A DNA stretch of 64,000 nucleotides from Adineta vaga (GCA_021613535.1 CP075494.1:2108001-2172000); one strand, 5' to 3'; counted from the first letter of the stretch, positions 10,745 through 59,830 are shown. Numbers and translations: made by a program. Notes: a model not told the origin generated them from the letters alone.

Positions 10745-10840
10745 TAAGTCCATTATAGAGTGAACGTAATCAAAAATATTGGATAACTAACATAAGTCCA
10801 TTATAGAGTGAACGTAATCAAAAAGATTGGATAACTAACA
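10745..10840. repeat. 48-bp tandem duplication of the PARP gene 3' end
   Basis: taagtccattatagagtgaacgtaatcaaaaa(t/g)attggataactaaca twice, one mismatch; includes the stop codon. Confidence 0.9.
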
Positions 10841-13800
10841 TGGTTATCGTATACAACGTAAACTCTACTTCCTCCTGTTTCACCGGTTACACTATTATAA
10901 CGTGCTTCTGATACTTTTTCATTTTTCTTTGGAGCTTGACGTAATCCTGGGTTATTTTCATCTTTATAATCAAAAGATTCTCCAGTTAATACTCGAGCTA
11001 AAAATACTTGACGTTTACCATCTTGTAATTTATGAGCATAATGTTTACAAGAATATGCGGCATTAACAGCAAAATATAATCCATTTCCCCATAAACCTTT
11101 TTCACAAAATGTAAAATCAAATCCATGTTCACCTTCATAAATTTGTCTAGGTGCTGCTGTTCCAGTACCATGAAATAATTCCTTTTCTATTTCGAAATCA
11201 GGTCTATGACTTAGTTCTTGTTGAAGAGTTCGATAACGAAATGTATAATGATTCCATAATCTTAAATTTTGTATTCTTTCAATTTTTTCAATTTTAAAAT
11301 TACGTAGAGTTTCTTTCATACGGTTTTCAATACGAATAAAATCTGGATGATTTATAGGTAATTGAACTAATATACATTGTTCTTCTTGTTCACCCCATTC
11401 TGTTGGAATATCTAATGAATCTTTTCTATTCGCTGCCATTGCTAATATATCTTGTACATATGACATAATTTGTAATTTAGCTCGTTGTAAATTTTCAGGA
11501 AAACCTTTTAATTGTAATAATAAATTACCCGTTTGATCTCGTTGAAAATCAATATGAATAAATTGTTGATTTGCAATATTGCTTATTAGTTGTTTATGAA
11601 CTTCAATATTGTCAGTTAAATTAACAGTAAACGGTTCTGATATTTTAGAAGATGCAATGAGTTCATGAATTTCTTTTTCTGCTTGTTTTACTGATATCTT
11701 ATTGATACCAAAAATATTCCATTCGTCTTGTTCAGATTGTACTTTTGAATGATATACATCTAATGGTTTAGGATGATATGTCTCAGATATGATCTGTGTT
11801 TTTGTTGTTATTGGTTCACGAATTATTTCTCGTGGACCACCTGTTTCTACATTCCTTTGATGTCCACATACAAGACGATTGTTCAATGCATTTGGATTGA
11901 TTTTTAATTTTTGTTTTAAACTAGGATCAAAGTGGATAGTATAGCAAACAATAGTACCTGTTGTTAAATTATCAGGATAAATTCTCAATTTTGATGGGAC
12001 AAAATTTTGTAAATATCGTTGAAAATCCTCTTCAATTTGACGTGTTTGAGTATCATCATAAATTTCCCATCCATCATCATTTAGCCAACACCATTTTGCT
12101 GTTAGTGGTGTTAGATTAGGTGTCATCATATCATTATTTTGATCAACATCTGTATTTGTATGATCATTAACAATTTCACGTGTAAATGAATTACATGCTG
12201 CATCATCAATATCTAATAAAATAACTTTTCGTAGATGTGAATTGGGAAAATCAGCAAAGAATTGTTTTATTGCACGAATAACAATATTCGTACAATTTTG
12301 TAATGGAAAACCATAAGTTGCAGCACTAATAGCTGGCATTGCTATACTATGATATTGCTCGTTTTCAGCAAGTCGTAAACTAGATAAAATAGTGGAAAAT
12401 AATAGTGAATGTTCATTATGATGACCATCACTATATTGAGGACCAATTGCATGAATAATACCTTTATAAGGAAGACGACCAGCTGTTGTTTTAACTGCTC
12501 TACCAGGAGGTATTGCTAAACCATTGTTTTCAGCAAGTATATATTTACGTTCTTGATCAAGTTCAGGACCAGCAGCAACAAATATTGCTTTATCGACACC
12601 TCCTGGATGACGTAATGCTCCATTTGCAGCATTTACAATTGCATCAACATCTTTCGCTTTTGTAATATCACCTTTCTTAACAAGAATTGTTTGACCACGA
12701 TTATTGACAACACATGCTAACGTTACATCAGTATCATCATTAATATTTGATGTCGAAGTCTTTGCATCTACTTTAACATCTCGAATACTAGTATTAGTAT
12801 TCTGTTCAATACGTGTAAGAAGTTTATATGAATTTCCTCGAATCAATTCTGATTCGGCTAATGGTAATTTAATAGAATTTCGAATAAGTTTTTCATTAGT
12901 ATCTTTAATAATAGTCTTGATTTTTTCTTCAACTAAATTGATGACATCAGCACAACCAGAAATTGCTATTTCAGCTGGATTTCTAGAATCAGTATGAATT
13001 TTCTGAGCTCTTGCTTCGTTCAATATTGTTTGAATAGCTGAATTAGCAAAACGACGAGTAATACGTTGAATAGGAATGATTACCGATTTACGTTCGATTT
13101 TATCCATTTTTCCTGTAGCTAAACCTTGTAAAGCTTCTTTAATCTCTTCAGCAATCGTAAATGATGATGCAGGAATAACAACTGTATGGTTTTCATTTTG
13201 TAATTGTATGTATGTGTCCCATTGTTTTTGAAATTGAATAATACTTGGTCGTCTTTTGACAAATAATGCATCAGATATATTATTATACATATCTAAAGAT
13301 GGTTTCCATACAATATATCCATGAATAATATCTTCGCATTGTTGAACAACATTCTTTGTCGTTTCTTCTTTAAAACTAACTACTGTAAAAGTAACTTTTG
13401 GTGCTGTGTGCTGTCGTTCGATCAAATTATCATATAATTTAACAAATATTATTGCTTCAAAATCATCAGATTGTTGTTTTTGTTTTAAATGCTTTCTAAT
13501 TCTCGTGGCAATGTCTCTTGCTATGTTCCAAGCTTCACGTGGATAACTTTGTTCTTTTTCTGATAAATTCTCAAGAAAATTTTGAATTTCCATATGTGCT
13601 GAATCAATACGAGATACAGGACCAAATAATTTTAAACAATGATTATTATTATTATCATCGTCGTCATTATTAAAAGTAACAACACGACGTGGAGCAAAAA
13701 ACTTTACCTGAATATTGTAAATTTTACTAAGTCTATTAATATCAGGAGACGCTTTTGTTTCAAGAAAATATGCCATAGCAGCTGATATAGGAACTTGAAC

Positions 13801-15115
13801 TTCAGTTTGAACAACATCATTCAAATAGTTTTTCATTTTTAATACTGTAGTATCTACATCAGTCTTGAATCCACTTATTTGCACATGCCATACACCTCGA
13901 GTGTAATGTATGAAAATATGCATCAGTGGATTTTTAATTGCTTGAAGGAAGTAAAATCTAATTTGTTTAGATTCTTCTTTTCTTGACATATTGTTTACTA
14001 CAGGTTTACCACGTTGTTGTTGTTTTAAAATAAATATGCGTTCTTGGTCTTTTAATGCCCATGATTTTATATGAAAAGTATAACTTTGTAATTCTTCTAT
14101 TGCGCTATTTAAAGAAGTTAGAGAATCGCTGCACAATGATACTAAAATACGTTGTTGAGCATTATCATTTGAAGTTGCCCTATTGGAAAAGTCGCTTGGA
14201 AAATTGAATAACGATGAAGCATCAGAATCAGAAGGTTGACTCATATTTTCACCATCATCATCATCATCATCATGTCGTTCATGTCTGTCATGTTCTTCAG
14301 AATCATCATGATCTTCTTTATTCTTATGACGATCATTCAAACTCAATTTGCTTAAATTTGGATAGCTGTTTGATGTTAGGATGACTTCGTTGAATATCTC
14401 CCTTTCCATGTGAACCACGATTATTTGAAAACCCGCGTCCTCTACCACGTATACCATCTCTATGCGGAGTATTGATACCTTTATTTTTAACATGCATGTT
14501 TGCTTTTTGGAAAGATGTTCCCACACGATGTCTGTTCACAAAATCTTTCAGCCAACATCCTTTATCGATTCTTTCCAAATGTTCCTTTAAGCCACAAGTA
14601 ATAGGTACAACCTTTTCATAGAGAAAGTTTTCAACATAAGATGTCATTTTGGTAGTTGCAGCATTATCCCCAGATATTTGCATTTTGCCAGATACAAGCT
14701 GTGCACTCTTAACACCTGGCTCTTTTCTAATCTTACTTAAAATTTCTTGACCGAATTCTTCAAAAAAATTATTTTGAGATACGCTTAATTCGATCGTATC
14801 TGATTTCGTTGGATTAGGACAATCTTTCTTTGTTTTTTCAGGTTTTCCTTCTGGATTACTTTCCCCGGAAGATACTTTATTGATCTTATGTTGAATTTGT
14901 TTTGCACAAGTATCAACCGATGTTGTCTTTCCATTGATAGATACGATTTCATGAAATTGATTCATCTTAATAAGAACATGTTGAGAATCTTCTAGTTTAC
15001 TGATAAATTCCTGAAACTCTGGATTTTGAATCACATCGCTGCTGACATTTAATATTTCTGTTTTCATTGTTTGAGACACTGGTGCAGCTGATTGCTTTCC
15101 ATGACCGGTTGCCAT
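10801..15115 (-). CDS. PARP14/PARP9-like macrodomain-WWE mono-ADP-ribosyltransferase with KH-like repeats; apparent frameshift near 14340-14390
   Basis: Macro domain (GDIT...DAIVNAAN...GGVDKAI, IIHAIGP, MPAISAATYGFP), WWE-like WCWLNDDGWEIYD, PARP (LFHGT, GLYFA, VYVVYD with no catalytic Glu). ORFs 14333-15115 and 10801-14526 overlap with no plausible intron. Confidence 0.85.
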
Positions 15116-15919: not shown

Positions 15920-18900
15920 TTATTGATGTCCATTAATCCATTTCTTATTGTCAAATAGTGCTTTCCGATCTTTTACTGAATTGCTTGCCGTAATCACAGG
16001 AATGGGTTCAGCTTTTCCGTCTAGTTTTTTGCTTGAGGGTGTGAGCTCTGCAGTAGTAGAATCGGCTGGAGACGCTCTTGCTTCTTTTCCTCGCTTATTT
16101 TCGCCGATTGGATTGCGTCTCCGATGAGAGGGAACGACTTCAGGTTCTGTTGGTCCCTTGCGTGTTTCCTCAGTCTTTATATGCTGTTGTTCCACAATCG
16201 ACGGAATGATTGGAGTTTTCAGATCATTTTTTCTAATAAAATCTTCCCAAGGATAAGCTTCGTCAGTAACTTTTATCAGCCTATGTGTCACTTGATTATT
16301 GTGTATGAGAATAACATAATGGCCGTAACGATAGCGAAGATCGCTTATTTCTCTGGCGAAGTCAATATCCCCGCTTATAAGCACTATTGTGGCAGGTTCC
16401 GGATGATCTTCTCTAAATACCTGTAGATTCTTGTAAATAAGTGCATCAGCACTATTTTTCACATTTATTACGTCTATAAGGTCCACGTTGGCATAATGAA
16501 GATCGCTTTTATGCTGCTCTGTTAAAAGTGTTGTTTTACATAAAACTTTAAAACAACGTTCCATCAACTTTCGGCCTTTAATTAGTCGTCGTCGGATTTC
16601 CATTACAATATCCAAAGCATTCTGTCCACGAGGAATGGCCACATTTTCAATATCCCAATATATACTCACTTTGCCATTGGGTTGTTCGGTACCTATATTT
16701 AAAAATGTCTATTAATCAAAACTACACTTTCTAAGAATCAAATCACATCAATATAAAGAAAATCAGAAAATAAATCTATAACATTCTGATAAATTGACTT
16801 CTGAAAGCTCTGTCTGTATGAGATGTATTCTGTTTTTCTTCTCAGTAAGCTCAGGTCACTCTTGTATACAAGTCATGCTTTGACACTGAATTTTGAAAAA
16901 TGAAAAGTTTCAATCAAGTTTCAACAATTAATGTCAATTTTCAGAGCCATACAGATTTATCTTTTTATAAATATTTGTTACCTGCAGAATACGGCGACCG
17001 TAAGGGTGTCGGCATCAGTTGCGGTGTTGGTGATGGTGTTGTTTCAGCTATATTTTCTGATATCTTGACAAAAATTTGATTATTATTTAAAGATGGTTCA
17101 CATTTTCCTGAAACATATATATCATAATATCGCCTATTTATCATCACTCCGCGATCTATATTCCAACTTACCATTATACCTTTCAATTGCTTTCATAACC
17201 GGCTCTTCTTCTTCAAATGTAATTGTAGCTATACCATTCAATTTAGATTTGTCATCTGACTTCTTAAATAAATAGATAGATAGCTTCTTCGTTCGTTGAT
17301 CAATCTAAATATACAATAATTTAAGTCAAAGAATAATTTTGTAAAAATGTTTGTTGTTCATACTTTGATTGAACCAACGCGATTAAATAGAATCCGTAAT
17401 GTATCGAATAGAACTTGTTCAGACACATGCAATGGTAAACCGCTGACAAAGATTGAATCTTTAATGGAATAATCGGACTTAGTTTCGTTTTATGTGGAAA
17501 TTAAAATACTAACGTACACAAAGATCTACTGATTCATGCTCGTCAGTCATTTGGACTCAAGTAACTTCTTAAATATTTATGAGATAGAGACCATAAAAAC
17601 ATGGATATTTTTATTAAACTCAAATGAATTCTTCGCGTCTTAAGTCTTCTTTCACTTAGATCTTGATTTATTTGTACGGAATTTGAAGCAGAGGTAAACA
17701 AAAAGAACTGAATAGTTTTATAAAAGTAAGCTGATCAATCTCTTATTCCATTCTAATAACGTTTATAGTCTTTATCATATAATCTCGGTAACAAATCAAT
17801 TTAATCCTTATACACGATATGGCTCTTTACAATTGTAATACCGCTCGTATCTTTGCTGTAGGATATGTGTCCTTTTTGGAGATTTTTCTACTATCAAAAT
17901 CTTGAATAACACTCTCTGTTCATCATGCATGATTAGCAACGTCACAAATCTTTAAGTCTTCATTCACTTGTGAATCTTTTCTTTACTTTCATCATCAATG
18001 AAGCATTTATACTCAAAAGTAGATTTATTTTTTAGTTCTTACACCATTCAAGCACTAAACTACAAGTCATATAGTTTAAAGATGTATATTTTCTCAAATC
18101 AAATCATTACGACTATTTTCTTTTCAATATACTCACTTTTTTTAAAGAATACTGGCTTTTTTGGTTCTGATATCTTGACAAAAATTTGATTATTATTTAA
18201 AGATGGTTCACATTTTCCTGAAACATATATATCATAATATCGCCTATTTATCATCACTCCGCGATCTATATTCCAACTTACCATTATACCTTTCAATTGC
18301 TTTCATAACCGGCTCTTCTTCTTCAAATGTAATTGTAGCTGTACCATTCAATTTAGATTTGTCATCTGACTTCTTAAATAAATAGATAGATAGCTTCTTC
18401 GTTCGTTGATCAATCTAAATATACAATAATTTAAGTCAAAGAATAATTTTGTAAAAATGTTTGTTGTTCATACTTTGATTGAACCAACGCGATTAAATAG
18501 AATCTGCAATGCATCTAACAGACGTTGCACAGGCATATCTGTTGGCAGACCCTTGATAAAAACTGCATTTTGTTCGGATGTTTCAGCACCACTAAAATTA
18601 CTCCTAGTATTATCGGTATCATCAGATTCTATCGTTCCGCTCTCCTGCGGTGGCGGTCCAAATTCGCCCTTTCCTTTCTTTGTCATCTCAACAATAATCA
18701 ATGCGTTTTCAAGGCTTGTTACACGTTTTCCTAAAATGTATAGGATCATATATTGTTTACGCGATAACTCTGGCTTCTACTCAAGCTTACCATTATATTC
18801 ATTAATTGCTTTCATTACCGACTCTTCATCTTCAAATGTAACCGTCGCCGTACCATTCAATTTAGTTATGTCATTTCTTTCTTTGTATAAATGGATAAAT

Positions 18901-27596: not shown

Positions 27597-28700
27597 CTAT
27601 ATCACACCACGGTTGTCACGTTTACTACTGGATCTGCCACGGATGTTACGATTGCTACTGGATCTGCCACGGATGTTACGATTGCTACTGGATCTGCCAC
27701 GGATGTTACGATTGCTACTGGATCTGCCACGGATGTTACGATTGCTACTGGATCTGCCACGGATGTTACGATTGCTACTGGATCTGCCACGGATGTTACG
27801 ATTGCTACTGGATCTGCCACGGATGTTACGATTGCTACTGGATCTGCCACGGATGTTACGATTGCTACTGGATCTGCCACGGATGTTACGATTGCTACTG
27901 GATCTGCCACGGATGTTACGATTGCTACTGGATCTGCCACGGATGTTACGATTGCTACTGGATCTGCCACGGATGTTACGATTGCTACTGGATCTGCCAC
28001 GAACATTATGCTTACTAATGGATCTGCCACGGCTGTCACGATTGCTACTGGATCTGCCACGGACAGTACGGCTTCCACTAAATCGTACGTTCCCGGTTAT
28101 AATGCGAGCCTTTGTACTACCATGATCAGGCAGTGCAGAAATCGTATCAACCACTTGAACTCCACGAATATCAGTTATTCGTATGTGCAATGGTTGATTT
28201 CCAAAATCAGTGCCGACAAAGTGATTGTAGTTCATTTTTTCCAGGTTGATCCACTGACCACCTTTCGAATATTCCAGCTTCACTATCGGAAACTTGTGAT
28301 TGCGTATTTGAATTGCAGCCCAGCATTGACTGCTGCCCTCTTTAATGCGATACTTAAGATTTCTCGAGATTGGTGCTTCAATGACCTTCCATTGAATATC
28401 AATCTTACCATCTGCCATGTTGCCAATTTCACGAAAAGCATTCGGTGAAAGATCCAGTGCTCCACTGGCTCCCTCAGGATACAAATCTGTTACATAGACG
28501 ATTGTTTGTCCTTTTGGTCCTCTTACGCGTAGATAAGCACCAGCCATAGCTGCCTTGACACCCTTGAAATTATATTGAAAAGGATTCAATGCTGTAATTT
28601 TCATGTCAGCTGGGATTGGATCGAGTAAAGCTGCTCCACCAACATATCCAGAACCTGTATATGTTGCATATCCTTTAAATGTATCGTCCCAGTTACTCAT
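27597..28700 (-). CDS. Bacterial-type expansin (EXLX1/YoaJ-like) with C-terminal RGRSSS repeat tail; no signal peptide
   Basis: Colinear with Bacillus EXLX1 as I recall it: GYATYTGSGY.GGA.LLDPIP, VYVTDLYPEGA.GALDLSPNAF, YRIKEGSS..WAAIQ.RNHK, YNHFV. Possible 5'UTR intron 28725-28775. Confidence 0.93.
   Translation of the reverse strand: MSNWDDTFKGYATYTGSGYVGGAALLDPIPADMKITALNPFQYNFKGVKAAMAGAYLRVRGPKGQTIVYVTDLYPEGASGALDLSPNAFREIGNMADGKIDIQWKVIEAPISRNLKYRIKEGSSQCWAAIQIRNHKFPIVKLEYSKGGQWINLEKMNYNHFVGTDFGNQPLHIRITDIRGVQVVDTISALPDHGSTKARIITGNVRFSGSRTVRGRSSSNRDSRGRSISKHNVRGRSSSNRNIRGRSSSNRNIRGRSSSNRNIRGRSSSNRNIRGRSSSNRNIRGRSSSNRNIRGRSSSNRNIRGRSSSNRNIRGRSSSNRNIRGRSSSNRNIRGRSSSNRNIRGRSSSNRNIRGRSSSKRDNRGVI
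27605..28062 (-). repeat. Coding minisatellite, 30-bp unit encoding RGRSSSNRNI (~15 units, 12 identical at 27631-27990)
   Basis: gatctgccacggatgttacgattgctactg tandem array. Confidence 0.97.
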
Positions 28701-30677
28701 AAGACTGGCTCGTTCGAAGGACTTCTATTAAACAGTTGTGAAAAAAAAGAAAAAGATATAGTCGAATAATCATACATTGTCTGTTTTTTGTTTTTGTAGC
28801 TTAAAGTAATATTTCGTCGATCATGCATCCACATGCGTCAATGGGAAAAAAGAAGGGAGAAAAACATTCGCGCTGTTGTAATTTTGTAATATGAAATAAA
28901 ACGAATAAATATAGATGACGAAAGAAATTACTCATTGACGAGCAAGATCAATGACAGTATTCTTTTCCTATGTTTTACTTTTGTCAAAGAAACGTATAGC
29001 GAAGAAAAGTGAGCAATCTTGACTGAATGAAATACAGTGAATCATATCGCATCCATGATGTGCTTGTTAAGACCTCTCTCCTAAAAAAATGAATTTTCAT
29101 CAAAATTTTTGACATTGAGATAAACACACGAGGAGATAGCCCGTGTTTTTTTCAAAAATAGCTTTCTTATCTTATATTGGAAAGCATTTTAGAAATTTGA
29201 GCGTGAGTTTTCGAGAATTTCTTAATGAAGGAACTTGTTAACTTTTCTCTTTGCTTGTTAGATAAGAGGTTCAAAAGAGGAGCCTCATAGAACCTGCAGT
29301 TTTAGACGCTCTTTCGAACAAAAAGATATCTATATATTAGACAAAGACTCACAGAGCATTCTTGTCGACAAAATTATCAATTTTTGAACCCTTCTTTGAT
29401 ACATGTCTCCGTCAAACAACGTAGTATCGATCTAAAAATTTTACCACACTTCCCTCACTTCGGTCATTTTCTTGTGAGATGTTCGAATAATTCATCATTA
29501 TTTTCTTCGAAACTATTTGTAGTTCCAGCTGCAAAAATAGTATCAGAAAGTTGAAGCGATGGTTTTTAAATTTAACTTTGGAAACGTATCGTCTTTACGA
29601 AAAACATAAAACTTTCTTTTTACTTTTACTGCGCGAACATATCAATTTTTTATGCTAAATTATGACTGAAACTGAATCGAGCAGTGAGATTCTTTTAGTT
29701 CAGTTGTTTATATTGATTTTTGATAGATGATATTCACTTTGTTGTTCAAAAAACGAAAAACGATGAAAACTATTTGATAAACACGATCTTTTTTCGTAAT
29801 TCAGTGAGAGAAATCGTAAAAAAGCGTTTTTCTCAATAAATCATAAAAAATGAGAATAAATCAAACTTTTTTTTCTGATGAAGGTAATTTTCTGATTTAA
29901 AATCTTAAAATTTTTAAAATTTACATTTGTTATCTGTTCATCAAGGGCCATCTGACAATATATCAATAAAAATAATAAATCATTGGTTAAAACTCGAACT
30001 TTCCGTACATTAAAAGAAGAAATTCAAACATTCGTTGCAATCGTAAGAAAGATATGAGCAGGATAAAAAATCGTTAACTTCGTTATGAAGCGCTTTAAGA
30101 AAATATTGTCCATGAGAATGAGAAAACACTATTCATATGACTGAACTTGTGACAAGTAATAGGGAACTGCTGCGGACTTATGCAAGTGCTCTATACCATT
30201 TCAAAGTATATGATCTACAACGAAAAATTTATTCAAGAAAATACTTCTTTAGTTTTTAGTCAATAGATTGTATTTTGAATCAGCTATGAATATCCAATTG
30301 ATATATGTAGAAAGTGATAGAAAATAGTTCTCCTCGATTTTTATGGTACATTCATCATTGAAGTGTCTGACGGGAAAAAGTGAGAATATACTTTAAACAA
30401 AAATTGCATCCATTACTCATCAAGTCGTTGCACTAATACTATTTTTATGTCATGGAGCAACATTGAGTCATCAAACGGGAGAATAGAAAACGATTAAAAA
30501 AATACCCGTTCGTCACACAGAAAGTAATATAAATTATTATCACCGAATTACTGAAATGACGTTTTATAGGTATATAAATGTCAATGAAACGAAAATAGGA
30601 AAATCAAACATTTGTTATTTGAAAGAATCTTGCTAGTACGTTTTTTCATCTCAACTTAATACAACGACGATAAAATC

Positions 30678-31763
30678 ATGTTCGGTAGATTACGAGTGAA
30701 AGGCAATAAAATTGTTGGTGACAACAATCATCCTGTTCAACTGAAAGGAATGAGTCTTTTCTGGAGTCAATGGTCCACTCCTTTTTACAATAGAAAAACA
30801 ATATCGTATTTAGCATCGAAGGTCAAATGCACTATTATTCGTGCAGCAATGGGAGCTCAAAGTGGTCAGGATGGCTATCTAGATGGTAATTCGAATAGAG
30901 AGCAGGCCATCCATCAAGTTGTGACTGTTGTTGATGCTGCTATCCGCGAAGATATTTATGTTATTATTGATTGGCATGCACATGATGCCATTCACCATAG
31001 AAATCAAGCTCGACATTTTTTTGTATCGATGGCGAAGAAATATAAAAACACTCCAAATGTCATCTTCGAAATCTACAACGAACCTATCAATGAGCAATGG
31101 CATGAAGTGAAAACGTATGCTGAATCAGTGATTGGTGCCATTCGAGATACAGGAGCTAAGAACCTGATAGTGGTCGGAACACCTTTCTATTGTCAGCATG
31201 TTGATATTGCATCTGAAGATCCAATAATTGCTTTTCGTGATGTGGCTTATAGTTTACATTTCTATGCTGGAACACATCGTAAGAGTGAGCGTTCTAGAGC
31301 TCAAAAGGCTTTAGATAATGGTATTGCTCTGTTTGTAACTGAATGGGGTACGTGCCAGGCTGATGGAAATGGAAATCTTGACCTAAACGAAACTCAAAAA
31401 TGGTTCCGATTTATGGATGAGAACAAACTCAGTTGGTGTAATTGGTCATTGAATGATAAACCCGAAAGTGCTTCGGTACTGAAATCAGACATTAGTCACT
31501 CAAGACCTGCTGGTCCATGGGAACTAAACGAGTTAACTGAGTCGGGAAAATTTGTTTTCAATAAAATATCCAGTGGAAGTCGTAGCAGTCGTGGCAGATC
31601 CAGTAGCCAGCGTAAGAGCCGTGGCAGATCCAGCAGCAATCGTAAAAGTCGTGGCAGATCCAGTAGCAAGCATAAGAGCCGTGGTAGATCCAGTAGCAAG
31701 CATAAGAGCCGTGGTAGATCCAGTAGCAAGCATAAGAGCCGTGGCAGATCCAGTGGAATTTGA
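30678..31763 (+). CDS. GH5 (subfamily 2-like) endo-1,4-beta-glucanase with RGRSSS repeat tail; no signal peptide, intronless
   Basis: QLKGMSLFWS, YVIIDWH, acid/base FEIYNEP, YSLHFYA, nucleophile FVTEWG, SWCNWS. TATATAAA at 30571. Confidence 0.93.
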   Translation: MFGRLRVKGNKIVGDNNHPVQLKGMSLFWSQWSTPFYNRKTISYLASKVKCTIIRAAMGAQSGQDGYLDGNSNREQAIHQVVTVVDAAIREDIYVIIDWHAHDAIHHRNQARHFFVSMAKKYKNTPNVIFEIYNEPINEQWHEVKTYAESVIGAIRDTGAKNLIVVGTPFYCQHVDIASEDPIIAFRDVAYSLHFYAGTHRKSERSRAQKALDNGIALFVTEWGTCQADGNGNLDLNETQKWFRFMDENKLSWCNWSLNDKPESASVLKSDISHSRPAGPWELNELTESGKFVFNKISSGSRSSRGRSSSQRKSRGRSSSNRKSRGRSSSKHKSRGRSSSKHKSRGRSSSKHKSRGRSSGI

Positions 31764-43435: not shown

Positions 43436-46400
43436 TTATTTATCAAGAAGAATAAGTTGTAATCTCTCACGCACAGTTTCCAGGTGTCTTATATACAATT
43501 GCAAATAAGGATGGTTGGGAGGCAGTGAACGTTGTCCAATTTCAACGGCACGTTCATACAACGGGACAGCTTCCAAGTATTCACCCATGTCGTCATATGC
43601 TTTTCCGATGTTGTTATATGATATTGCTAATTCCGGATGATTTTCAGATAAATTGTTTTGACGAATCTCAAGTGCCTTTTTGTAAAATGGAAGTGCTTTC
43701 GAGTTCTCGCCCATATTGTTATATACCAAAGCGATATTGTTGTAGGATGTAGCCAATCTGAGGGGATGTAGAGGGGCAGCTTCTTGCAAGATCTCCAGCG
43801 TCTTTTCGTACAACAAAAGTGCCTTTGGGTAATCACCGATGTGGGAATATACCAACCCCATATTGTTGTAGAGCTTATATAGCAGGGGATTAGAAGCAGA
43901 TAGAGTTTTCTGAGAGATATTGAGGCATTTTTTGTAGAATGACAGTGCTTTCGAGTACTGACCTATTTCGTCATAAATCGAACCCATGTTATAGTAGGAA
44001 GTAGCCAAAATGAGATGATTTGTGGGAAGTGCTTTTTCGCAGATTTCACTAGCATTTTCGTAGAAAGATAGAGCTTTCAAGTATTCGCCAGTGTACTCGT
44101 ACATGGAACCGATCCTGTTGTAAGAATCAGCCAAAAAGTGATTGTCAGAAGGGAAAGTATTTCGGCAGGTCTCCATACCTTTTTCGTAGAACATCAAAGC
44201 CTTCGAGTATTCACCATTGTGCTCATACATGAAACCAATATTTTTGTAAGAAATAGCCAAAAGAGAATTGCGACAAGGGAAAGTGTTTTGTAAGATTTCC
44301 ACTGTTTTCTCGTAGAAGGAAATTCCTTCCGAAAACTCGCTAATGTTAGCATACACTGAAGCGATGTTGTTATAAGCGGTAGCCAAGGAGATATTATCAG
44401 ATGGGACACGTTTTTGCGCAATATCTAGTGCCTTTTGGTAGAACATAAGTGCTTTCGAACTCTCACCGATTTTGTTATATACTCCACCAATGTGATTATA
44501 GGTAGTTTCCGACAAGTAATCGTCTAAATCGAGTGCTGCTTCTAGAATTTCAATCGCTTTCTTGTAAGACGAAAGTGCTTTCAAGTACTCCTCGCTCTTG
44601 CAATACGTGGAGCCAATGCAAACGTAGCTCAGGATCAAATCAGGATGGCTCCGGGGGAGATTTTTTTCACGAATATCCAGTGATTTTTGATGAAACAAAA
44701 GCGCTTTTGAGTAGTCATACATCTTTTCATACAACAGAGCGATATTGTTGTAAAAAGTGGCGCAGGAAACATCGTTAGTAATCAGAGTGTTTTCCTTGAC
44801 TTCCACGACTTTCTCGTAAAACCAAATGGCTTTTGAATAATCGCCTATTTCTCGATAACAAGAACTGATCTTTATGCAGCAATTCCTCAAATAAGGATGG
44901 TTAGGAAGGAAAACTTTTTCTAAGATTTCGAATGCGTTTTGATAAAAAGGGAGTGCTTTTGAGTATTCGCCTAGTTCTTCATACACGCAACCGATGAAGA
45001 AATGGGTTTTAGCGGTATTTTTATGGTTTAAAGGATCGATACTTTGAATTTTAAGCGCTTTTTCATGGAGCGACAGTGCTTTCCAGTGCTCACCGATGTC
45101 ACGATATAACGAACCTATGTTGTTGTAGGAAGTAGCTAAAGCGGGATGATTCGGCGGGAGAAATTTTTCACGGATTCGAAGTACGTTTTGGTAAAGTGAA
45201 AGTGCTTTCAAATATTCGTGCATTTCAGCATACGTACAGCCGATGTTGTCGTAGATCGCAGCCAAATATGAATCGTTCGATGGAGTGATGTTTTGACAAA
45301 TTGCAAGTGCTTTTTCGTAGAACGAAAGTGCTGTCACGTATTCTCCCATGTGAAAATACAGCACTCCTATGTTATTGTAGGAAATAATAAATGAGGGATG
45401 GTTCGGATAGAGAATCTTTTGTTGGATATCAATTGCTTTTTCGTACAAAGGAACTGCTTTCAGGTGTTCCGACATATCAGCATATACAGAGCCGATGTTT
45501 ATATACAAAGTGGCCAAGTAAGGATGGATCGAGCCAAGATTTTTGGTGAAAAGTTCAAGTGCTTTTTCGTAATACAAAAGTGCTTTTGAGTACTCGCTCA
45601 TGTGATAATATACCGAGCCGATATTGTTATAGAAAATAGACAAATTGGGGTGGCTTGGAGAGAGAGCATTTTGCTGGATTCTAAGTGCTTTTTTGCAACA
45701 CTGCAGTGCTTTCAAATATTTCCCCATGTGATTATAGTGGATACCGAGGTTACTATAACTAGTAGCCAATTCAGGATGATTCGGAGAGAGAGTATTTTGC
45801 GCTATTTCAAGCGCTTTTTCATCAAACGATGATGCCTTAGAGTATTCTCCCATGTTACAATAGACCGAACCGATGCCATTATAGCAACGAGCCAAATCGA
45901 GAGGATTGGGTGGGAAAGTTTTTTGTACGAGCTCAAGTGCTTTTTTGTACAAGGAAATGGCTTTCTGGTACTCTCCTAAATGGTTATGGACATTGCCTAT
46001 AGAGCAGTAGGTAGTGACCAACAGTGAACTGTGCGAAGATGCAGGTCCTTGGAAGCATGCACGCGCTTTTTCCAGTGAAGAAAGTGCTTTTGAGTACTCG
46101 CCCCTGTTGCAATACACCGAACTTATAAGGTTGTAGGTGACAGCAAAATTGGGATGGTTCAGAGGCAGAGATTCTCGGTTGATTTCGAGTACTTTTTCAT
46201 AAAACGAAAGTGCTTTCAAAAATTCGCCCATATTGGAATGAACCAACCCGATATTGCTATAGATAGAAGACAAATCTGGATGGTTCAGAGGGCGAACTGT
46301 TTTTATGATTTCGAGAGCTTTTTCATAGAGAAAAAGCACTTTCGAGTAATCACCAATCTTAGAGTATGTGTTACCCAAAGAATTGAACAAATAAGCCAAG

Positions 46401-48068
46401 TCGGGTGTGACGTGAGGGAGTGCTTTTTCGGCGATGTCCACTCCTTTTTCGAGAAAGGATAATGCTTTGGAGTGCTCGCCAATATCGTTATGGCAAATAC
46501 CAATGCTATTGTAGATTCTAGCAAACACAAGATTGTCTGAAGGAAGAATTTTTTGGTTAATTTCAAGTGAACTGTGACAGAACAGAAGCGCTTGCGTGTT
46601 ATCTCCTTGTTTACTCTTGATACATCCAAGATGGTAAAAGAGATCTGCCTTTACAATGTCATTTGATTCCTGACTGAGCAAAAACTGGAATATTTCTTCA
46701 GCCTTGTCCAATTCGCCAAGCTGTATTAGTAATTTCCCCAGTCGTTGCCATCCTGTTGAGCCTCCAGTCTCACATTGTATTATTGCAGTCAAAGCAGCGA
46801 TCTGCGGATCCTTATCGCTTGTCAAGGAAAGCCTCACTTTCCACAATCGTTCGTTGCCGTTGATTTGCTCCGCCGTACAGATACGAAAGACTGTGTGCAT
46901 GGAGAAGAGAATCTCCTGTTCTGATGTAAAATGGCTGACATTGTCGATGTGGGCAAATGGAACTGAGATTATTGAGTGATCGATAGTTATTTCGAAGAGA
47001 ATTCCAATTAAACTGGGATCATCTTGACTACTCTCAGCAAAAGTAAAGGAAACATCTCGATCGATGCTTGTTGATAAAAAGTTGTTGAACGACATCAGTC
47101 CTCCTATTGACTGCATGAGTTTCTCAAAGTCTGTCTTGCATAGTCCCTGACCTCGATAGACCGTTAAAAGTGGCACTTGATCGTCACTCCATTGCTTCGA
47201 AGTGAAGTTGTTCGATTTGTCGATGGAGATCACGAATGAAAAAAGACATTTTTACAATTGTATCCACTTCTTGAGCACGCAGAGCTCGGTTGAGCATGGG
47301 ATAGAGAAAACATCCGTAAGTGTACCACCAGATGGGTGTCTGTAGTGAATATTCACGTTCGAACCGTGCGATCTCTTCCAACTGGCGTTGATTGTCGCCG
47401 CACTGGAACCGGCAATAGGCGGCTAGTTCTTTGATACATTGTGCATCATTGCCGTCGATTTCCAAGAAAATCTCTTTGAATAGTTGAGTATACATGAAAG
47501 ATTGATCGAGTTTCTCCAGATTTGTTGTAGATGATTCCTCATTAGCCAATAGAAAGCTTATCGGCATCGAGTCTTGATCACATTTTCGTGCAGCTCGTTG
47601 CAGGGAATCACACATAGGACCAATCTGCGTGAAAACACCCTTCACTTTCGGCCACTCTTTTGTCCATTGTTCATGCAACGACTTGCTGTCGCAAAAGACA
47701 AAGATAGAGTCGACCTCGGGAATATCGTGGATGAAGCGTACTGTATATTGTCCGAAAGAACTGGAAACAATGACAAAAATCTTTTCGTCCTTTACATCGG
47801 TGAGATAGTCGACGCATTCATCAACATCAGTGAAAGTGTCGACGGTATTCACAATGCTTCGTAGATCAGTAATGAAATTCTCATAATCTTCTTTGGATTC
47901 ATGGATTGTAGCGTCCAACCAGATGAGAAGAAAGTTCTGCATGATGTGTCTTTTGACATTGGTGTTCACTGGCAGGCTGTTTGTGACGCATTTAGAAAAA
48001 GTGGACAATATTTCGATTTTCTCTCTATGGTTAGAGCTGCTAGCTGTTGTTAATTTTTCGTTGTCCAT
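43436..48068 (-). CDS. Receiver-like domain + R-S-E-type (ARTC/VIP2-like) ADP-ribosyltransferase + ~25 42-aa TPRs; +1 frameshift near 47200
   Basis: FLLIWLD N-terminal domain, WWYT...LNRALR, VYRGQG, FLSTS, EQEILF, then kinesin-light-chain-type TPRs (HP.LA.SYNNIG..Y...GEYSKAL.FYEKAL). Removing one T in cacttcgaag fuses the two ORFs. Confidence 0.85.
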
Positions 48069-49167
48069 ATCTTCTATAATTGTCAAAGGGAAATCGTAAA
48101 AGAATAAATGCAAAATAGACAGAGAGAAACGTCTATTTATGTAATATATTATTTTATTCTTTTCCGACTCTTTTCTGTCATTCGATTTGTTTTCTCTCGT
48201 TTTGATAAAATAGGAGTGCTGAGCGAGTATTCTTCGTTCGTACGTGTCTTTGAGACCATCCACAGAAAAAATTTCTACAAATACCGCGGTAATTGACGGT
48301 TTATTACTTGCGGGTTTGAACGGTGATTCTGCACCGAAAAAGTTAGACCTTTTACTAGGTTTTTCTACACCGCCCGACACCGCCGTATGTTCAAACCGCG
48401 ATTATTAACGATTTCTGAACAAAATGAATTCGTCATATTAATGGTATATTATTTCTGATATCTATCTGATAATCTTTACCTTTTCTATGTTTGTAACCTA
48501 TCCATTATCTTAAGATGATACTTTAACACCTCAGTCAACTCAATAAATACCACTATCTATTTTTCATTTATTTTCCTCTGATTAAATTCGAACTTCTTAT
48601 CGAGTGATTGCAATCCACTAGTTCCATTGAATCATCTGCTGATGTTCATACTAATATCAGATATGATAGTTTATCTAATCAGTGATGCAAAAAACTTCTC
48701 ATTTAGACTGATATGTTTCATTTATTAGTAGATTTATAAGAATCTTACAATTCCTAATAATTTAAAACTCATTCATAATTTTATTAAACTTTCTGAGATA
48801 TTCATGTTGATGATGTGCTATATGCAATATGCAATATATAAAATCTTATTTATTACTCCTAGTCATGATTATTAAACTATAGACAGTCTATTCGAATAAA
48901 ATCATTTCTGGAGACAAATATACATTTATGGGGATCTTTAGTTGATGAACTGCGGTATTATATGTTACGACAAAGTCTAACTATTTGAAATATTATTACA
49001 GTTATGCCTATATGTAGGTCTATACGTCAGAACACATGAGAATACTACTCAGTACACTTATCTTTATTCCATCAGTCGAAAAAAAGATTTGTCTATTTCT
49101 ATCTCTGAACCCTTACTATCTCATGGATATATTGTTACAAATGATCATCCCAACGAAACCTGACTAA

Positions 49168-52480: not shown

Positions 52481-52996
52481 TCTTTATAGAAGATGAAATA
52501 TATTCTATATTCACGGATTTACAATAATTGATTAAAAATCATAGTAACCTCTATCCATTACAATATCCATCAGCATTATATTACATCAAAATAAGCTATA
52601 TGTCGTTATAGCTTATCCAGAATCGGTCTCTCATTGTAATGAATCGTTGGAATTTCTCAATGAAAAATTTACATTTCTAATCCATTAAATACCACATTTA
52701 TTTAACTTTCCATGTGCAATAAGTGTTCGTTATTATGAAAAAAAAACATCAAAATATAAAAAAATACTTTCCTCTCTCTCTTTACCTTTCATCGAATGTA
52801 TTTTTCAAAGGGGAAAATTTTTTTTGTCAATATGTAAAAAAGACGTTGGAATTTTCATATGAAACCAAACTTACCTTTGAATAAATAGAAAGCAAATAAA
52901 ATCATTTTATGTCATTATTTTCTGTTCGCAGATTTCTTTTTACCCACTGAATATTCAACCAGTCTTTTTTTCAAAGACTATATTTGAATTACACCA

Positions 52997-55900
52997 ATGG
53001 AATCTGTTGATGAAACAAGATTAAAACAATGTTTAAGTTCAATCATTCAAAAAATCGATGAAGTTTTAAAACAACAAAAAAAAGAACCGCCACAAATACG
53101 TCCAACAACAACAACAACGGACAATATTACGAATGATCCATTACTTGAGAATTCAATTCAAAATAATAACGTAAATACATTTACGATCGACAATGAAGAA
53201 GCTGAAGTATTAAATACATTAACAAATGATATTCAAAATATTCTAAGAGATTCTTTACCACAATTATCAGAATTATGTTCAAGTTATATTGAAAAACATT
53301 TACATCAATATCATTTTGATTCTAGTCAACAGGTATTTACAGAAGGACTTACTCTCAATATTCTGTATTCATTTAAACATGATTTAAATGGTTTATTATC
53401 AGCTGCACGTGCTTATCCAGCTGCATTGAAAGGAGAATTAGAAATAGTAGAAACTTTTCTTAAACGTTTTCCATTATATAAAGATAAACCAGGTTTTTGG
53501 GGTACAACATTCTTATATTCAGCTTCAAAAAGTAATAATCTTCCATTAGTAAAACATTTAATTGAAACACTTAGTTGTTCTGTAAATGCTCAAAATGAAT
53601 GTGAAATGGCATTTACTTTGATCAGTGATGATAACAATCGAACAGATCTTACTTATAATCCTGATCCAAAATTTGCTTCAACAGCATTACATGCTGCTTG
53701 TTTTAATAATAATTTAGATATTGTTAAATATTTAATTAGTAAAGGAGCAAATTATTTTTCAAGAAATCAATTAGGTGAAACTCCAATTCAAAATGGTGGA
53801 TTCCATAGAGAAATTCAAAAATTCTTTAATGATTTTCTCGTCACTTCATATACAAATCTCCCGAATATGTCTTTACCAAATGAACCTGTTTTAAATTGTT
53901 ATGATCGAAAACCAACAAATTGTATTTGGGAATATAAACCAGTAAAAGGATTACAATGGGATGAATTTACAATCAGTGAACATAATATTTTATCTTCTGT
54001 TTTTGTTGTAGAAAAGAATAATCAATTATTTACTCCAACAACTTATTTAAGTTCTAATGGAGGTACATATAATGTTAATCTATTGACATTTTTACGTGGT
54101 GGAAAAAATCAAGAACCAAATCCATCCAATCAAGATAGTTTAGCATGGATACGATGTCGAGGTTCAAGTGTAGCTAATTTTGATATTCATTGTGTTTGGC
54201 AATTGATGTTTATTAAATATGAATTGAAAACAAATGATACGCCATCATTAGATTCAAAAACATTTCCAACTGTTTATGATAGTAAATTTGAAATCAAATT
54301 AAATTGTTGGTATACATGTGATTCAAAACGAAATACTTTATTAGATGAAGCAATGAATTATCGACGACGTTATCTTGATTTAAATTGTAATTTTCATACA
54401 AATTATCATGAAAATCGAATTATTAAATGTAATCTTTATGAATTTCAATTTAGTAATAATGATAAAACAATCATTGGTTTTCTTCGTTGGATACCAAAAT
54501 TAATTTCAAATACATCAAATGATCAAGATACAATTAAAGTTTTAGATAATTTTAAAATGATTCAAAATTCAAATCCAATACCTTTAACAACAAAACGATT
54601 AGAAAAATCGATTAAAACAAAGAATGAAAATGATATAATAGAATTAGAAATTCCAGATGAAAATGGAACAATTGATGATGATGATGATGATACAAATATT
54701 TCAACTGAAAATATCGGTACTTGGAGTTTAGATGATCTATTACATGATGATTCACAAGCAATGGATATTGATGTCTCATTACCAAGTACGACTGAATCTA
54801 CTGATCAACCAAATGATCCACCGGAACAAATCGAAGTGAAACAAATAGATACAATAGATAATGATACAGAAGAAAAAGCAAAATTTATTTTAGAATTTGA
54901 AAATAAAAAATTACACGAACAAGTAAGCCGTTTAAGAATTCAACTCGATGAACAATTAGAGAATGTAACTGAACATGCTAATCTTATTTTAAAATCAACA
55001 TTAGACGAAGTCGATCGTTTACAAACTGAACTTCAAACAAAATCTACACATGAAAATTTAATTAAAGAAACTTCACAAAGTATTTTAACACGAACATATA
55101 CTTTACCGAAATCAAATTTATCAATACTTTCAAAATTTAAATTAATCTTTAATACATTAAGAAAAATTGATTTTCCTTTAAAAACTTATTTTAAAGATAA
55201 TATACCCTTAATGGAATTGGATGATCAGTATGAAAATCAAATTATTCTTCGAGGTCTTGTAATTCATCATGAAACATTAGAGAAGATTTTTCAAAGAATT
55301 CAAAAACTTATTCAACAAATTAATTCCACAGAAAACGATTATAAAAGAAAAATCAATGAAAAAACTCAAAAATTCTTAAGATTAATTCAACAAATACATT
55401 CAAAGAAGATGATTTATTGGAAATCTTATTATAATTCATTAGTAAAATTAGTTAATGAACATTATAATGATGATATAAAGAAATTTTCCAAATATATTCA
55501 TGATAAATTAAGAAATTTCTTAGATATTTCAATTCAAGAGCCAGAACGAGAATTTGAAAAAGATATTAATGATTTAACAAATGATTATTTAAGAAATGAA
55601 ACATTTACACATGATATTGAAGACATAAAAATGAAAGCATTCGAAGAATTTATTCATGAACATATTATATTACAAGAAAAATCAACAAAAACAATACCAA
55701 ATAAAGAATCAATTTCAATTCTAAATAAACATATTAATAAACTTAAAAATATTCTTAAAACAGATAGGAAATATAAGGGTTATGAATTAAAACATTTCTA
55801 TATGATTGTATCATTATTACAAAGATTAATGATCTTTTATCATTGTTTTCTTTTACAATTACCTTTATTTAATGCATCAATTGATCTTTTAAATCATATT

Positions 55901-58900
55901 CAAACAAATACGATTGTTACCATTTCAACGGCAACTGGTTCTGGAAAATCTACTCTTCTTACGGCATTATTAATTGCCGATGGTTATGATAAAGTAATTG
56001 TTACTCAACCACGACGTTTACCATGTAATCTAATTTCACAACGTGTTAATTCTATGGTAAATGATGATATAAGTGGATGGGCAGTAAGTGGTGCTGAAAA
56101 GAATGTTAAAGCGAAAATTCTTTATTTAACTGATGGTTTATTAAAAGAACGTTTATTAAATGATGCAAATTTCATAACTGAAAGTACGAATGTCAACAAA
56201 TCGGTCGTATTTTTTATTGATGAAGTTCATGAACGTTCAATTAATATTGATTTATGTTTGGCTTTATTTGCTCGTTTATTAAAATTAAATCCATCTTTAC
56301 ATACAAAAATGAAATTAATTATATCATCTGCAACATTAGATCAATCAGTTCCAACATTATTTCGAAATATTCCTCGTTGTTCTTTAAAAGAATTTAATTT
56401 AACATCATTATCAACATTATATCCTGTAAAAATTCATCGAACACCGAATGAAAATCTTCTGGATCTCGTTCAAAAACTTTACAGTGAACGAAATCGTTAT
56501 GATCAAATTCTTTGTTTTGTTAGTTCAACACAAGATACACATGAAAATTGTCAATTATTAAAAAAACTTACTAAAGGTGCTATTATTGCTTATCCACTTA
56601 TTCAATCTCAATCAGCAATTGAACAACAAAAATTCATCGAAGAAGGAAGTGTATTCTTTTCAACAACTGTTGCTGAAACATCGTTAACATTTCCATGTTT
56701 AAAATATGTTATTGATACAGGTTTAATTAATATGCCTGTATATAGTTTAGCTTTAGAACGAACACAATTAGAAGAAATTAAATCAGCAAAATCAACAAAA
56801 AAACAACGATTAGGTCGACTCGGTCGAACACAACCAGGAGAATATTATGCATTGTATGATTATTCACCAGGTGAACAACGAGAATATCCAATACCACAAA
56901 TATGTCAATCAGATTTAGTTAATATTGAATTTTCATTACGAAAATCTCGTTTAACAACAAACTTACGTGATTTTATTCAATATTTACCTGATAAACCAAA
57001 ACGAGAATTTATTGATGATGCAATTAAACAATTACAACGACTAGAATTTATTGGTCCTTCACCAAATGAATATTTTACTTCATTAGGTAAATCAATTGCA
57101 GAATTACCTGATTTTACATCTTTATCAATGTCAAAAGCTGTTCGTTTTGCATTAACACGATATCGTTGTGGTCGTGATTTAATTATTTTATCATCAATAT
57201 TATCGGTTCTAAATACTTCATCTATATTAAAATCAATTCCAGCTGAATATAAACGTTCCGAAGGTGATTTTATGACACTTTTACAAGTAATGAATACTGT
57301 CTTATCAGTTCGTGATGCAGTTACACCAAAAGAATTTAATCCTGATCGATTTTGTGCTAGTAAACGTTTAACTCCTATTGCACATGTTATTAAAGCAGCA
57401 TTACGACGATATAAAAGTTTAGAAAAAGCATTTACTTTATCCGATAAATATCGTGAACTTGCTCAAATTCAATCGGGAAATTGGGAAAATATCGTCAAAG
57501 CTTTATTAAAAGGTTTTTCTGATAAAGTTTATGCATCACAAAAATTACTTCAAGGTAAAACTCAACAATATGTTAAATACAATATTCATCAACAACAAGA
57601 TTCATTAGATGAACCATGTTCAATTGCAGTTATTGATCGTACATCAACATTAAGAACAGGAAATAAAGGTGCATTACCAGCTTCATTAGTTTTAGCACGA
57701 GATGTTCGATATTTAACAGCAATACGTTCATCAGCAATTTTATCATTTGTTGGACAAATTGAATCTTCATGGTTAGAATATACATTTAGTCGAGAATTAA
57801 AATTAAATCAAAATGAACAACAAAAATTAAAAAATAATAATATATTACAACAAGCAATTCAACAATTTCCTTATATACAAATACATATAAATAATGGTAA
57901 ATTAGTTTTTCAAGGTCCATCTGGTCATATTCTCAATGCCGAACTTTATATACGACAACAATTAATAACATCATATAGTTTTACTTTATCATCGGATCAA
58001 GCGAATGATAATTTAGCAAGAAATTTGAAGAGTGTAACAAGTATGCCAGGAGATCTGTTTGGTCCATTAAGATGGCGATGGGAATCCGAATGTCAAGTAA
58101 AAGTACGAACAAAAATGCATAAAAATAATGGAACAATTGAAGTCAATGTTGAAGGTCTTGATTCACAAAATCAAGCTGTAGAAAAAGAATTTCGATCATT
58201 TTTATCTTGGCTTCGTATGTGTGCAGTTATTCGAGATCCAAATTCAGGTGTTTCACCTCGTGTATTAAAACCACAAATACGTGATAAATTTCGTGATATG
58301 GAAGCGAAAATTGGTAATATAACTGATCCTGAACGAACATCGGTCGATCGATGGAGAAGTTTAAAAGGTCCTGATGCAACACGTGAAACACGTATGGAAG
58401 TTGTTGCTTGGATTGCTGTATGTCAATATCATTGTCGATTAGAAGGTGGTTTTGTTCGAGATTGGGTTGTTGGAAATCATCGATCACGACCACCAAATTC
58501 ACCTCCAGATCAATGGATATCATCATCCACGACAACAAGTCAAGTTCCAAGATTACCCGTAGAACTTGTTCCCGCCGATCTCGATTGTCATTTACCTCAA
58601 TCGAAAATCTTTGATATTGAAGCTTTTCTTGATAAATTATATAGTTATGAAATTCATGCAAGATCAGTTCGTCAAGATTGGCGTTATGTTGTTATTGTTG
58701 ATGAAAAAACGAAGACCGGACCGTTTACAATGGATTTAATTGAACCACATATTGCCTTAACACATGATCGAATTGATTTTGATGTTAGTAATTTATCATT
58801 AGAACGTGAATATACAAAAGATTTAGGTATGCGTGTTGATATAACAGGTGGAACATATCCAATTGAATTAGAAACAATCGTTGAAAATATTCGAAATAAA

Positions 58901-59645
58901 AATTTTCAAGTTTTACGTCCAATTGATGGTGAAAATGGTCCAAATACATCAGGAACAGTTGCAGAACGAATTGATAGAATGAAAGCAAGAGGATGGACAC
59001 AAATTGGTACACCATTTTCATTTATTCCAAATCCACCATCAACTTGTAATGCATTACTCGTTCCTTATCCATCATCCACTGTACTGTATCAAAATCTTGT
59101 TACAGAAATGAAAAAAATTCCAGGAATGAAAGTAATTACAATTGAACAAATAAAAAATCCTAATATTGAGGCATTATATGAATATATGAAACGAACAATC
59201 GCAAAAGAAATTCCAGGAGATGATCCAAATGAACGTGAATTATTTCATGGAACAAGTGGTGAAGCTATTCAAGGAATTATTGATCGAGGTTTTGATGATC
59301 GATATTTTTCGCCTGCTGGAGCTTGGGGTTAGGTTACAAAATTCTTCCGAGAAAAAAAAATTTTTCATTGTTTTTTATTTAGGACGTGGTGCCTATTTTG
59401 CTGATGATCCTCGAAAATCGAATGGCTATGCATCACCCGATCCAACTACAAATCGTCGTGTTATTTTTTATAATAAAGTTGTATTAGGTATTGAATCTGC
59501 GCAAGCACAAACAAATAATTCTCTGAGTGCAGCACCACCAAATCATCATTCAGTTCATGGGAATGGTTTTCAATATCAAGAATATATTGTCTATCGATAT
59601 GGACAAGCTTTACCGTATCTAAAAATTACTTATACAGCACCTTGA
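52997..59645 (+). CDS. Giant fusion protein: ankyrin repeats + WWE-like + coiled coil + DEAH/RHA helicase + class II nucleotidyltransferase-like + PARP catalytic domain; intron 59328-59382
   Basis: ANK (TALHAACFNNNLDIVKYLISKGA). Helicase motifs ATGSGKST, TQPRR, TDGLL, DEVH, SAT, STTVAETSLT, QRLGRLGR. NTase EGGFVRD...ADLD...DRIDFDVSNL. PARP LFHGT / GRGAYFA / YQEYIVY. The 55-nt GT-AG intron splices in frame. Confidence 0.9.
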
Positions 59646-59830
59646 TAACATTCGGGACTGGTTTTTTTATCGTAAAATTATATATTGACCTTTTTTCGGA
59701 CTGAGAGAAAAATTTATTTGATTATTTAAAGAGTTTTTTTCAAATATTTAATAAAGAAATTAGTTTTACTGACAATTTAAACTATTTTTTGTTTGTATTT
59801 ATCAATACAAAAATAATTCATCATATATTC

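Follow-up and report, generated by a model that had tools for sequence, protein, structure and literature searches.

A candidate RNA-directed enzyme of Adineta vaga combining a DEAH helicase, a class II-like nucleotidyltransferase and a PARP in one chain

Closest described systems and architecture of the fusion

DEAH helicases are loaded at a 3' single strand of RNA and travel in the 3'-5' direction, class II nucleotidyltransferases (NTases) extend RNA 3' ends, and WWE domains often bind ADP-ribose chains. In the TRAMP complex (Trf4-Air-Mtr4), and likewise in bacterial PAP I acting with the degradosome, a polymerase that adds tails works together with an RNA helicase of 3'-5' polarity. The antiviral PARPs (PARP14/DTX3L and PARP12/ZAP) and the tankyrases share, in various combinations, WWE, degenerate KH and ankyrin modules and a tankyrase-like H-Y-E domain, and to our knowledge none of them carries a DEAH helicase or an NTase.

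The gene described here lies in a window of 64,000 nucleotides (contig C5:2108001-2172000) of the Adineta vaga genome, which was surveyed for further copies over its 100.8 Mb and six contigs. Its product of 2197 aa, read from two exons on the + strand (window positions 52997-59645), carries on one chain and in this order ankyrin repeats, tandem WWE-like modules, a DEAH helicase with its HA2 region, two KH folds, an NTase and, last, a PARP of tankyrase-like type with H-Y-E. The KH folds were absent from the original prediction. All of these domain types are known, and no known family accommodates the whole protein. As the original prediction had supposed, no characterised protein with helicase, NTase and PARP is described in the literature searched, which also holds no description of the fusion architecture or of DUF5769 (see below); a mention in Burroughs and Aravind 2016 is possible. 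The features of the gene are:

52997..59327, +, exon 1: codons 1-2110 and the first base of Gly2111 (ORF, homology)
53594..53794, +, ankyrin repeats, Pfam-matched part, aa 200-266 (Ank_2 E 3e-11)
53924..54109, +, WWE-like module 1, aa 310-371 (Pfam WWE at family level; hhalign)
54194..54499, +, WWE-like module 2, aa 400-501, weaker than module 1 (conserved W..W pattern; hhalign)
54587..54916, +, acidic variable linker, 29% D/E (composition, family alignment)
54917..55876, +, long variable pre-helicase region, probably helical, without family match
55877..56893, +, DEAH/RHA RecA1 and RecA2, motifs GSGKST, DEVH, SAT and QRLGRLGR intact (Pfam DEAD, Helicase_C)
56894..57772, +, HA2 (winged helix, ratchet) and probable OB fold (profile match to DHX15/Prp43)
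57779..58219, +, two KH-like folds, aa 1595-1741, without GxxG loop (predicted model, structure comparison)
58343..59032, +, class II-like Pol-beta NTase with GGFVRD, D1861/D1863, D1913, RIDFD and RxxKMxxRGW (model, conservation)
59111..59642, +, tankyrase-like PARP catalytic domain, H-Y-E, spanning the intron (Pfam in both exons, homology)
59328..59382, +, putative intron of 55 nt, GT..AG, within the PARP domain (sequence and homology)
59383..59645, +, exon 2: second half of the PARP (Y2115, E2177) and stop (Pfam, homology)

A single ORF (52997-59332) encodes 2111 aa, and the rest of the PARP is located on the second exon. Splicing out 59328-59382 would link AWG to RGAYF. A phase-1 intron at the same glycine codon is common to seven other genome copies and to a helicase-less NTase-PARP gene, so the intron reading was accepted and a frameshift or pseudogene at the 3' end was ruled out; in intronless relatives the reading continues straight across the exon 1/exon 2 junction. 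The two exons were searched separately against databases and folding was done on single regions. The closest named database protein is an A. vaga hypothetical protein with 99% identity over the NTase. Elsewhere in the window, 43436-48380 (-) encodes a long TPR-repeat protein with 15 repeats, preceded by a 398-aa ORF without Pfam match, and 27597-31763 holds a DPBB/expansin-like ORF and a GH5 cellulase ORF, both foreign-looking and of higher GC.

Ankyrin repeats had been predicted at the N-terminus and were recovered there by the Ank_2 match. The WWE-like modules placed beside them are supported at the family level only: Pfam WWE is matched in 28 of 41 family members, weakly (best 4e-5), and the Pfam scan of the window copy alone gave no WWE match. 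A distant relative (P0072) presents two WWE stretches (E 1e-10) at the same place in the chain, and the family profile aligned with them by hhalign at 96.9% for module 1 and 87.9% for module 2.

Concerning the helicase, motifs I (55937), II (56219), III (56327), V (56663) and VI (56804) were found where a complete DEAH/RHA enzyme had been claimed, and Pfam matched DEAD and Helicase_C (E 2e-8). A family profile covering the part downstream of RecA1 and RecA2 matched the HA2 part of DHX15/Prp43 (E 4e-9), which therefore points to a full DEAH/RHA helicase. HA2_N was matched in 15/59 family members and OB in 4/59, a weak support for the latter. DHX15/Prp43 is alike in the RecA motifs and the HA2 region, whereas the rotifer protein adds ankyrin, WWE, KH, NTase and PARP domains and is multi-copy and patchy. 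A DEAH11/12-type RBR helicase was ruled out, since there is no RING-IBR-RING in the protein (Pfam), and no DEAH11-type KH models were among the matches listed for the KH region. Folding of aa 1592-1775 gave two KH-like units (pLDDT 90), the first of which resembles PCBP2 KH3 (Z 9.1, rmsd 1.9 A); tandem-KH structures were also matched. In this predicted model, aa 1595-1741 present the type I KH fold. The GxxG RNA-binding loop is absent from the KH alignment consensus, and the pair is degenerate, as in the KH models of DTX3L/PARP14, with a weak KH_DTX3L match.

At the end of the chain, PF00644 was matched in both exons and the H-Y-E triad is formed by H2084, Y2115 and E2177, in agreement with the tankyrase-like PARP of the original prediction; the best matches of exon 2 are tankyrases (E 2e-7). 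In parsed relatives the triad is kept almost without exception (H 51/51, Y 51/51, E 50/51). Tankyrase membership was ruled out, as only a short ankyrin block and no SAM are found (Pfam), and the rotifer protein differs from PARP14/DTX3L, PARP12/ZAP and the tankyrases in having no SAM, macro or CCCH. H-Y-E is necessary and not sufficient for the synthesis of poly-ADP-ribose chains; it is also present in PARP3 and PARP4, which are mono-transferases, so the triad is no proof of poly-ADP-ribosylation here. A second PARP gene, PARP14/9-like, is located in the window at 10801-15115 (-), with a 1241-aa ORF carrying Macro (E 2e-30), weak WWE and PARP matches, and an NYN nuclease ORF (15920-16669, -) lies just upstream of it.

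The nucleotidyltransferase domain and its viral relatives

The motifs EGGFVRDW, ADLD and DRIDFDV begin at 58442, 58574 and 58766, as had been predicted, and aa 1783-2012 were modelled with confidence (pLDDT 88). Sequence and profile searches of the domain against solved structures gave no real match. By structure, Foldseek ranked class II A-adding/CCA enzymes first (E 3e-4), and an exhaustive structure aligner placed four class II enzymes on top (Z 8.0-8.9, only moderately above background), with TENT5B (Z 7.2) and antibiotic NTases (Z 5-6) lower down. cGAS-like and CD-NTase structures, which belong to class I, reached Z 4.5-5.2, and membership in the cGAS/OAS/CD-NTase group was ruled out on this comparison. 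The structure prediction thus returned the expected Pol-beta NTase fold, in a form like the class II head, and the modelled domain has the hG[GS], DxD and third acid of this superfamily.

Furthermore, G1817, R1821, D1822, D1861, D1863, D1913 (D/E) and D1927 are kept at 95-100% in 117 distinct sequences, and therefore the catalytic motifs are beyond chance; the acids are kept in 117/117 (D1822), 111/117 (D1861), 115/117 (D1863) and 113/117 (D/E1913). GGxVRD and DxD, which make up class II motif A, are both present, at a spacing longer than canonical. The RRD of motif B had been described as altered, and this proved to be family-wide: its central Arg, tied to ribose recognition (PMC2910056), occurs in 0/238 sequences and Ile takes its place in 193/238, with an ambiguous register (RID or DFD). 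The EDxxR base template of the neck was likewise found by pattern in 0/238 sequences. There are no body or tail RNA-binding domains: the structural match stops near residue 200-215 of the bacterial enzymes, and the PARP His follows ~80 residues after the RGW motif, where the class II body/tail would be. Since RRD, EDxxR and the tRNA-binding body/tail are all missing, a CCA-adding or poly(A) enzyme was ruled out. An engineered Arg-to-Ile change in RRD reportedly let a CCA enzyme accept dNTPs, in work attributed to Cho et al. in 2007. With Ile at the RRD centre, this NTase family could possibly use dNTPs as well, depending on the register.

The class II CCA-/A-adding enzymes and bacterial poly(A) polymerase (PF01743) are alike in head fold over ~155 residues (rmsd ~4 A), GGxVRD, DxD, the third acid and a DFxxN-like segment. 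On the other hand, identity with them is ~10-14% with no Pfam hit, RID or similar stands for RRD, an insert of 35-40 residues precedes DxD and the domain sits inside a helicase-PARP chain. The proposed match to CCA/poly(A) enzymes therefore stood for the head fold, GGxVRD and DxD and failed for RRD, EDxxR and the body/tail.

The best fold scores of the NTase came from giant-virus proteins (E 5e-8, TM 0.5-0.56; TM 0.64 in a further comparison), several of which carry RING, F-box or BTB in their annotation. DUF5769 (PF19073) is matched weakly in 39 of 43 family members (family best E 4e-7), the window copy scoring 21 bits against a curated cut-off of 26.1, and weak matches to the phrog_1614 NTases were also obtained. 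Pandoravirus NTases have DFD for RRD, no EDxxR and two conserved arginines further on (bioRxiv 10.1101/2023.12.02.569716), and the family counterpart of this arginine pair is RxxKMxxRGW. The giant-virus NTases (DUF5769-like, Mimiviridae L685-type and Pandoravirus cluster 7) share with the rotifer domain the apparent replacement of RRD by DFD, the lack of EDxxR and a basic pair near the C-end. They differ in that the viral proteins, as annotated, have no helicase or PARP and that the sequence score falls below the Pfam cut-off.

Moreover, language-model features pointed to Gad2-family phage proteins (score 0.95, the families of all 30 hits), with a fold similarity of TM 0.55, a likeness of features and fold only. 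Gad2 (PF26128) was absent from the Pfam scan matches, and the Pfam copy used may lack PF26128. Gad2 is a phage NTase that blocks Gabija defence (bioRxiv 10.1101/2023.05.01.538930), by a mechanism reported as unknown (PMC12904381); a rotifer protein would not be expected to inhibit Gabija. As a counter-defence protein it has no helicase or PARP, unlike the rotifer fusion, with which it gives no significant direct sequence match. By its predicted structure, the NTase amounts to a head-like unit whose nearest counterparts are giant-virus and Gad2-type NTases and not CCA/poly(A) enzymes proper. When viral and prokaryotic contigs were scanned by pattern, no relative was found, and therefore no close viral or bacterial donor.

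Copies in the genome and relatives in other organisms

Nine helicase-linked copies and four helicase-less NTases (13 loci) were found in the genome, and two of the former, a C6 copy and a C3 duplicate, are apparently broken. The C6 copy (35-38 kb, L032) is full-length and has stops and frame changes within the NTase. The gene-sized C3 duplicate (19.42 Mb, L023) lies on another chromosome, is 95.7% identical to window 52489-59820 and lacks 1 bp of a T run (window position 54177), which is either a real deletion or an assembly error. Its divergence is uneven, with pS ~0.10 in the pre-helicase region and 0.01-0.03 elsewhere, which suggests a mosaic history. For the NTase, pN between recent copies is 0.004 and pS 0.019 (few changes), and the comparison shows a gene family apparently under purifying selection, with copy turnover.

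The helicase-less NTases (L033:3511-4479, L034:5436-6068, L035:3883-4506 and L036; ~210-350 aa) match from the point where several full-length copies have an intron. L033 retains the PARP half-exon across a long intron, whereas L034 and L035 seem to be NTase alone. The genome also holds a second group of ~8 giant DEAH helicases (L049-L056; C1, C3 and C5) with 25-34% identity, some with CCCH fingers and three with a PARP match close downstream; no NTase match was found near these sister helicases. A WWE-HA2-PARP gene with best hits in Macrostomum has been reported in bdelloid data (PMC10809525).

In the database search, the matches listed include 78 long relatives, of which every named one is bdelloid; no named animal outside the bdelloids is among them, and the range is patchy. 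The window copy belongs to an orthologue group of Adineta, Rotaria and Didymodactylos (support 97). Across bdelloid genera the NTase is as conserved as the helicase core (72-81%), and the pre-helicase region is far more variable. Other homologues were found in a Euglena gracilis transcript (helicase and NTase, with PARP absent from the record), in an MMETSP protist and in many eukaryote-like contigs of 23-62% GC. A metagenome scan gave further loci whose frames are open only if TAA/TAG = Gln, with several copies per sample (L101, L104, L107, L109, L116, L117, L121, L126 and L133; the complete ones with frames of 2100-2600 codons). These are probably from ciliates; no telomere repeats were found in their contigs, and such homologues would escape standard gene calls.

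The order helicase, KH, NTase and PARP is kept in nearly all distant loci with enough flank, and the architecture search beyond rotifers that had been proposed thus found it again in protist-like contigs. In a quick, unrooted tree, weak at depth and including only the best hits of each search, there are several deep lineages, and a branch with support 86 has the named bdelloid sequences together on one side. A transfer of the gene from a protist into bdelloids is plausible on this sequence evidence. Regarding the neighbours in distant contigs (L019:3056-7867 and 16413-18473, L022:4706-9702, L037:2537-4275), a long-repeat protein ending in an apparent ADP-ribosyltransferase was observed, as well as WWE-EEP, an RBR-type ubiquitin ligase, and EEP-Macro together with another EEP-like gene. 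In two distant contigs the fusion gene is adjoined by genes for an EEP phosphodiesterase, combined with WWE or Macro. No similar EEP neighbour was found in ~40 other distant loci, and a conserved EEP linkage was ruled out as a rule. The EEP between two C4 copies of the A. vaga genome resembles an ordinary nocturnin.

Proposed function and its meaning

The three catalytic domains have intact and conserved active sites in a fixed order, with the tandem KH between helicase and NTase. The protein could be a single-chain enzyme for the surveillance of RNA 3' ends, probably deployed against viruses, mobile elements or RNA damage, a reading to which a probability of about 0.45 is given. The KH pair and helicase would take the place of the class II tRNA-binding body, absent here, and present the RNA 3' end, to which the NTase would add a tail of relaxed specificity, taken as non-templated because the EDxxR base template is lacking. 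This tail could be the single-stranded landing pad of the DEAH helicase, which would pull 3' to 5' through structure, while the PARP may ADP-ribosylate itself, partners or RNA and the WWE pair may read this mark, concentrating the enzyme. TRAMP and PAP I with the degradosome may serve as a working analogy for such tailing by one chain, although TRAMP is multi-subunit and has a class I polymerase, a Ski2-type helicase and no PARP; the rotifer protein would then be comparable to a one-chain TRAMP to which a PARP of antiviral type has been added.

The tailing model is favoured by the ranking of class II RNA 3'-adding enzymes and TENT5B over cGAS-like structures, by the RNA-binding modules (HA2 region and KH pair) that adjoin the NTase, by a conservation of the NTase like that of the helicase core together with the low pN, and by the persistent linkage of helicase, NTase and PARP in distant contigs. 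Against it are the moderate Z values, the presence of helicase-less NTases and the RING, F-box or BTB annotation of several viral relatives, which hints at protein targets. The defence side of the reading was adopted because the family is expanded and patchy, has viral relatives and in some contigs lies beside ART, Macro, EEP or RBR genes; copy number with two apparently broken members, the several copies per sample in TAA/TAG=Gln organisms and viral nearest relatives of the NTase domain, one of them an anti-defence protein, argue for conflict. However, the orthologue group is kept in three bdelloid genera as for a housekeeping gene, and PARP activity was not significantly enriched in the available portion of the bdelloid fungal-infection data. 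The sensing of foreign RNA that was originally proposed is, like defence, backed indirectly, and the sequence makes a function in RNA surveillance or defence plausible.

The same observations can be read in other ways. The NTase could put back 3' nucleotides that tRNA, rRNA fragments or further structured RNAs have lost, in repair after desiccation, radiation or ribotoxin attack or in routine processing, with helicase and PARP as helpers. The class II fold and the stable orthologue group would suit this function, CCA-type NTases serve repair in jumbo phages (PMC7824862), and foreign RNA ligases of bdelloids are strongly induced on fungal attack (PMC11258130) and also after radiation (PMC10809525). 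It is nevertheless rather unlikely, as the absence of EDxxR and of a body/tail makes sequence-specific CCA repair improbable, copy number turns over, the range is patchy and no ligase domain or conserved ligase neighbour was seen. The viral annotations with RING, F-box or BTB, the block of a protein complex by Gad2 through an unknown route, the loss of the ribose-reading RRD and the existence of helicase-less copies would agree with NMPylation of a protein or small acceptor, the NTase being a second writer beside the PARP that is switched on when the helicase engages RNA. This is judged unlikely, given that solved structures rank RNA-adding enzymes first and antibiotic NTases lower, and that the KH pair and helicase are directly upstream of the NTase in all full-length members tested.

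An OAS/cGAS-like system, with RNA sensing by the helicase and a diffusible oligonucleotide produced as signal by the NTase, would be consistent with the Pol-beta superfamily, the absent primer-binding body and the EEP genes adjoining two distant loci. The low scores of cGAS-like and CD-NTase structures, the ~40 loci without such a neighbour and the nocturnin-like C4 EEP make it improbable, and on the predicted fold tailing fits the NTase better than second-messenger synthesis. Finally, the sister helicases with a PARP nearby and no NTase match would allow the NTase to be an inactive RNA- or nucleotide-binding scaffold of a helicase-PARP; with the near-complete retention of its four acids, this is very improbable.

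Returning to surveillance by tailing, a broader and more tentative proposal is that the fusion represents a eukaryotic immune or surveillance family, deep and so far undescribed, whose helicase, once activated by RNA, would drive two writers, a PARP and a Gad2/giant-virus-type NTase with a new product, this NTase type being common to viral counter-defence enzymes. The new product could possibly be a non-CCA, perhaps deoxy-tolerant tail, a new signal or protein NMPylation. The fusion would provide a cellular eukaryotic context for the biochemically uncharacterised Gad2/giant-virus type of NTase; RNA is suggested as the likely substrate by the helicase and KH domains joined to it, and the natural helicase-less NTases make the enzyme directly assayable. 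A three-enzyme chain of fixed order in rotifers and several protist lineages may point to an unrecognised RNA-tagging pathway that combines tailing with ADP-ribosylation, and it would extend what is known about how bdelloids handle pathogens and RNA damage.
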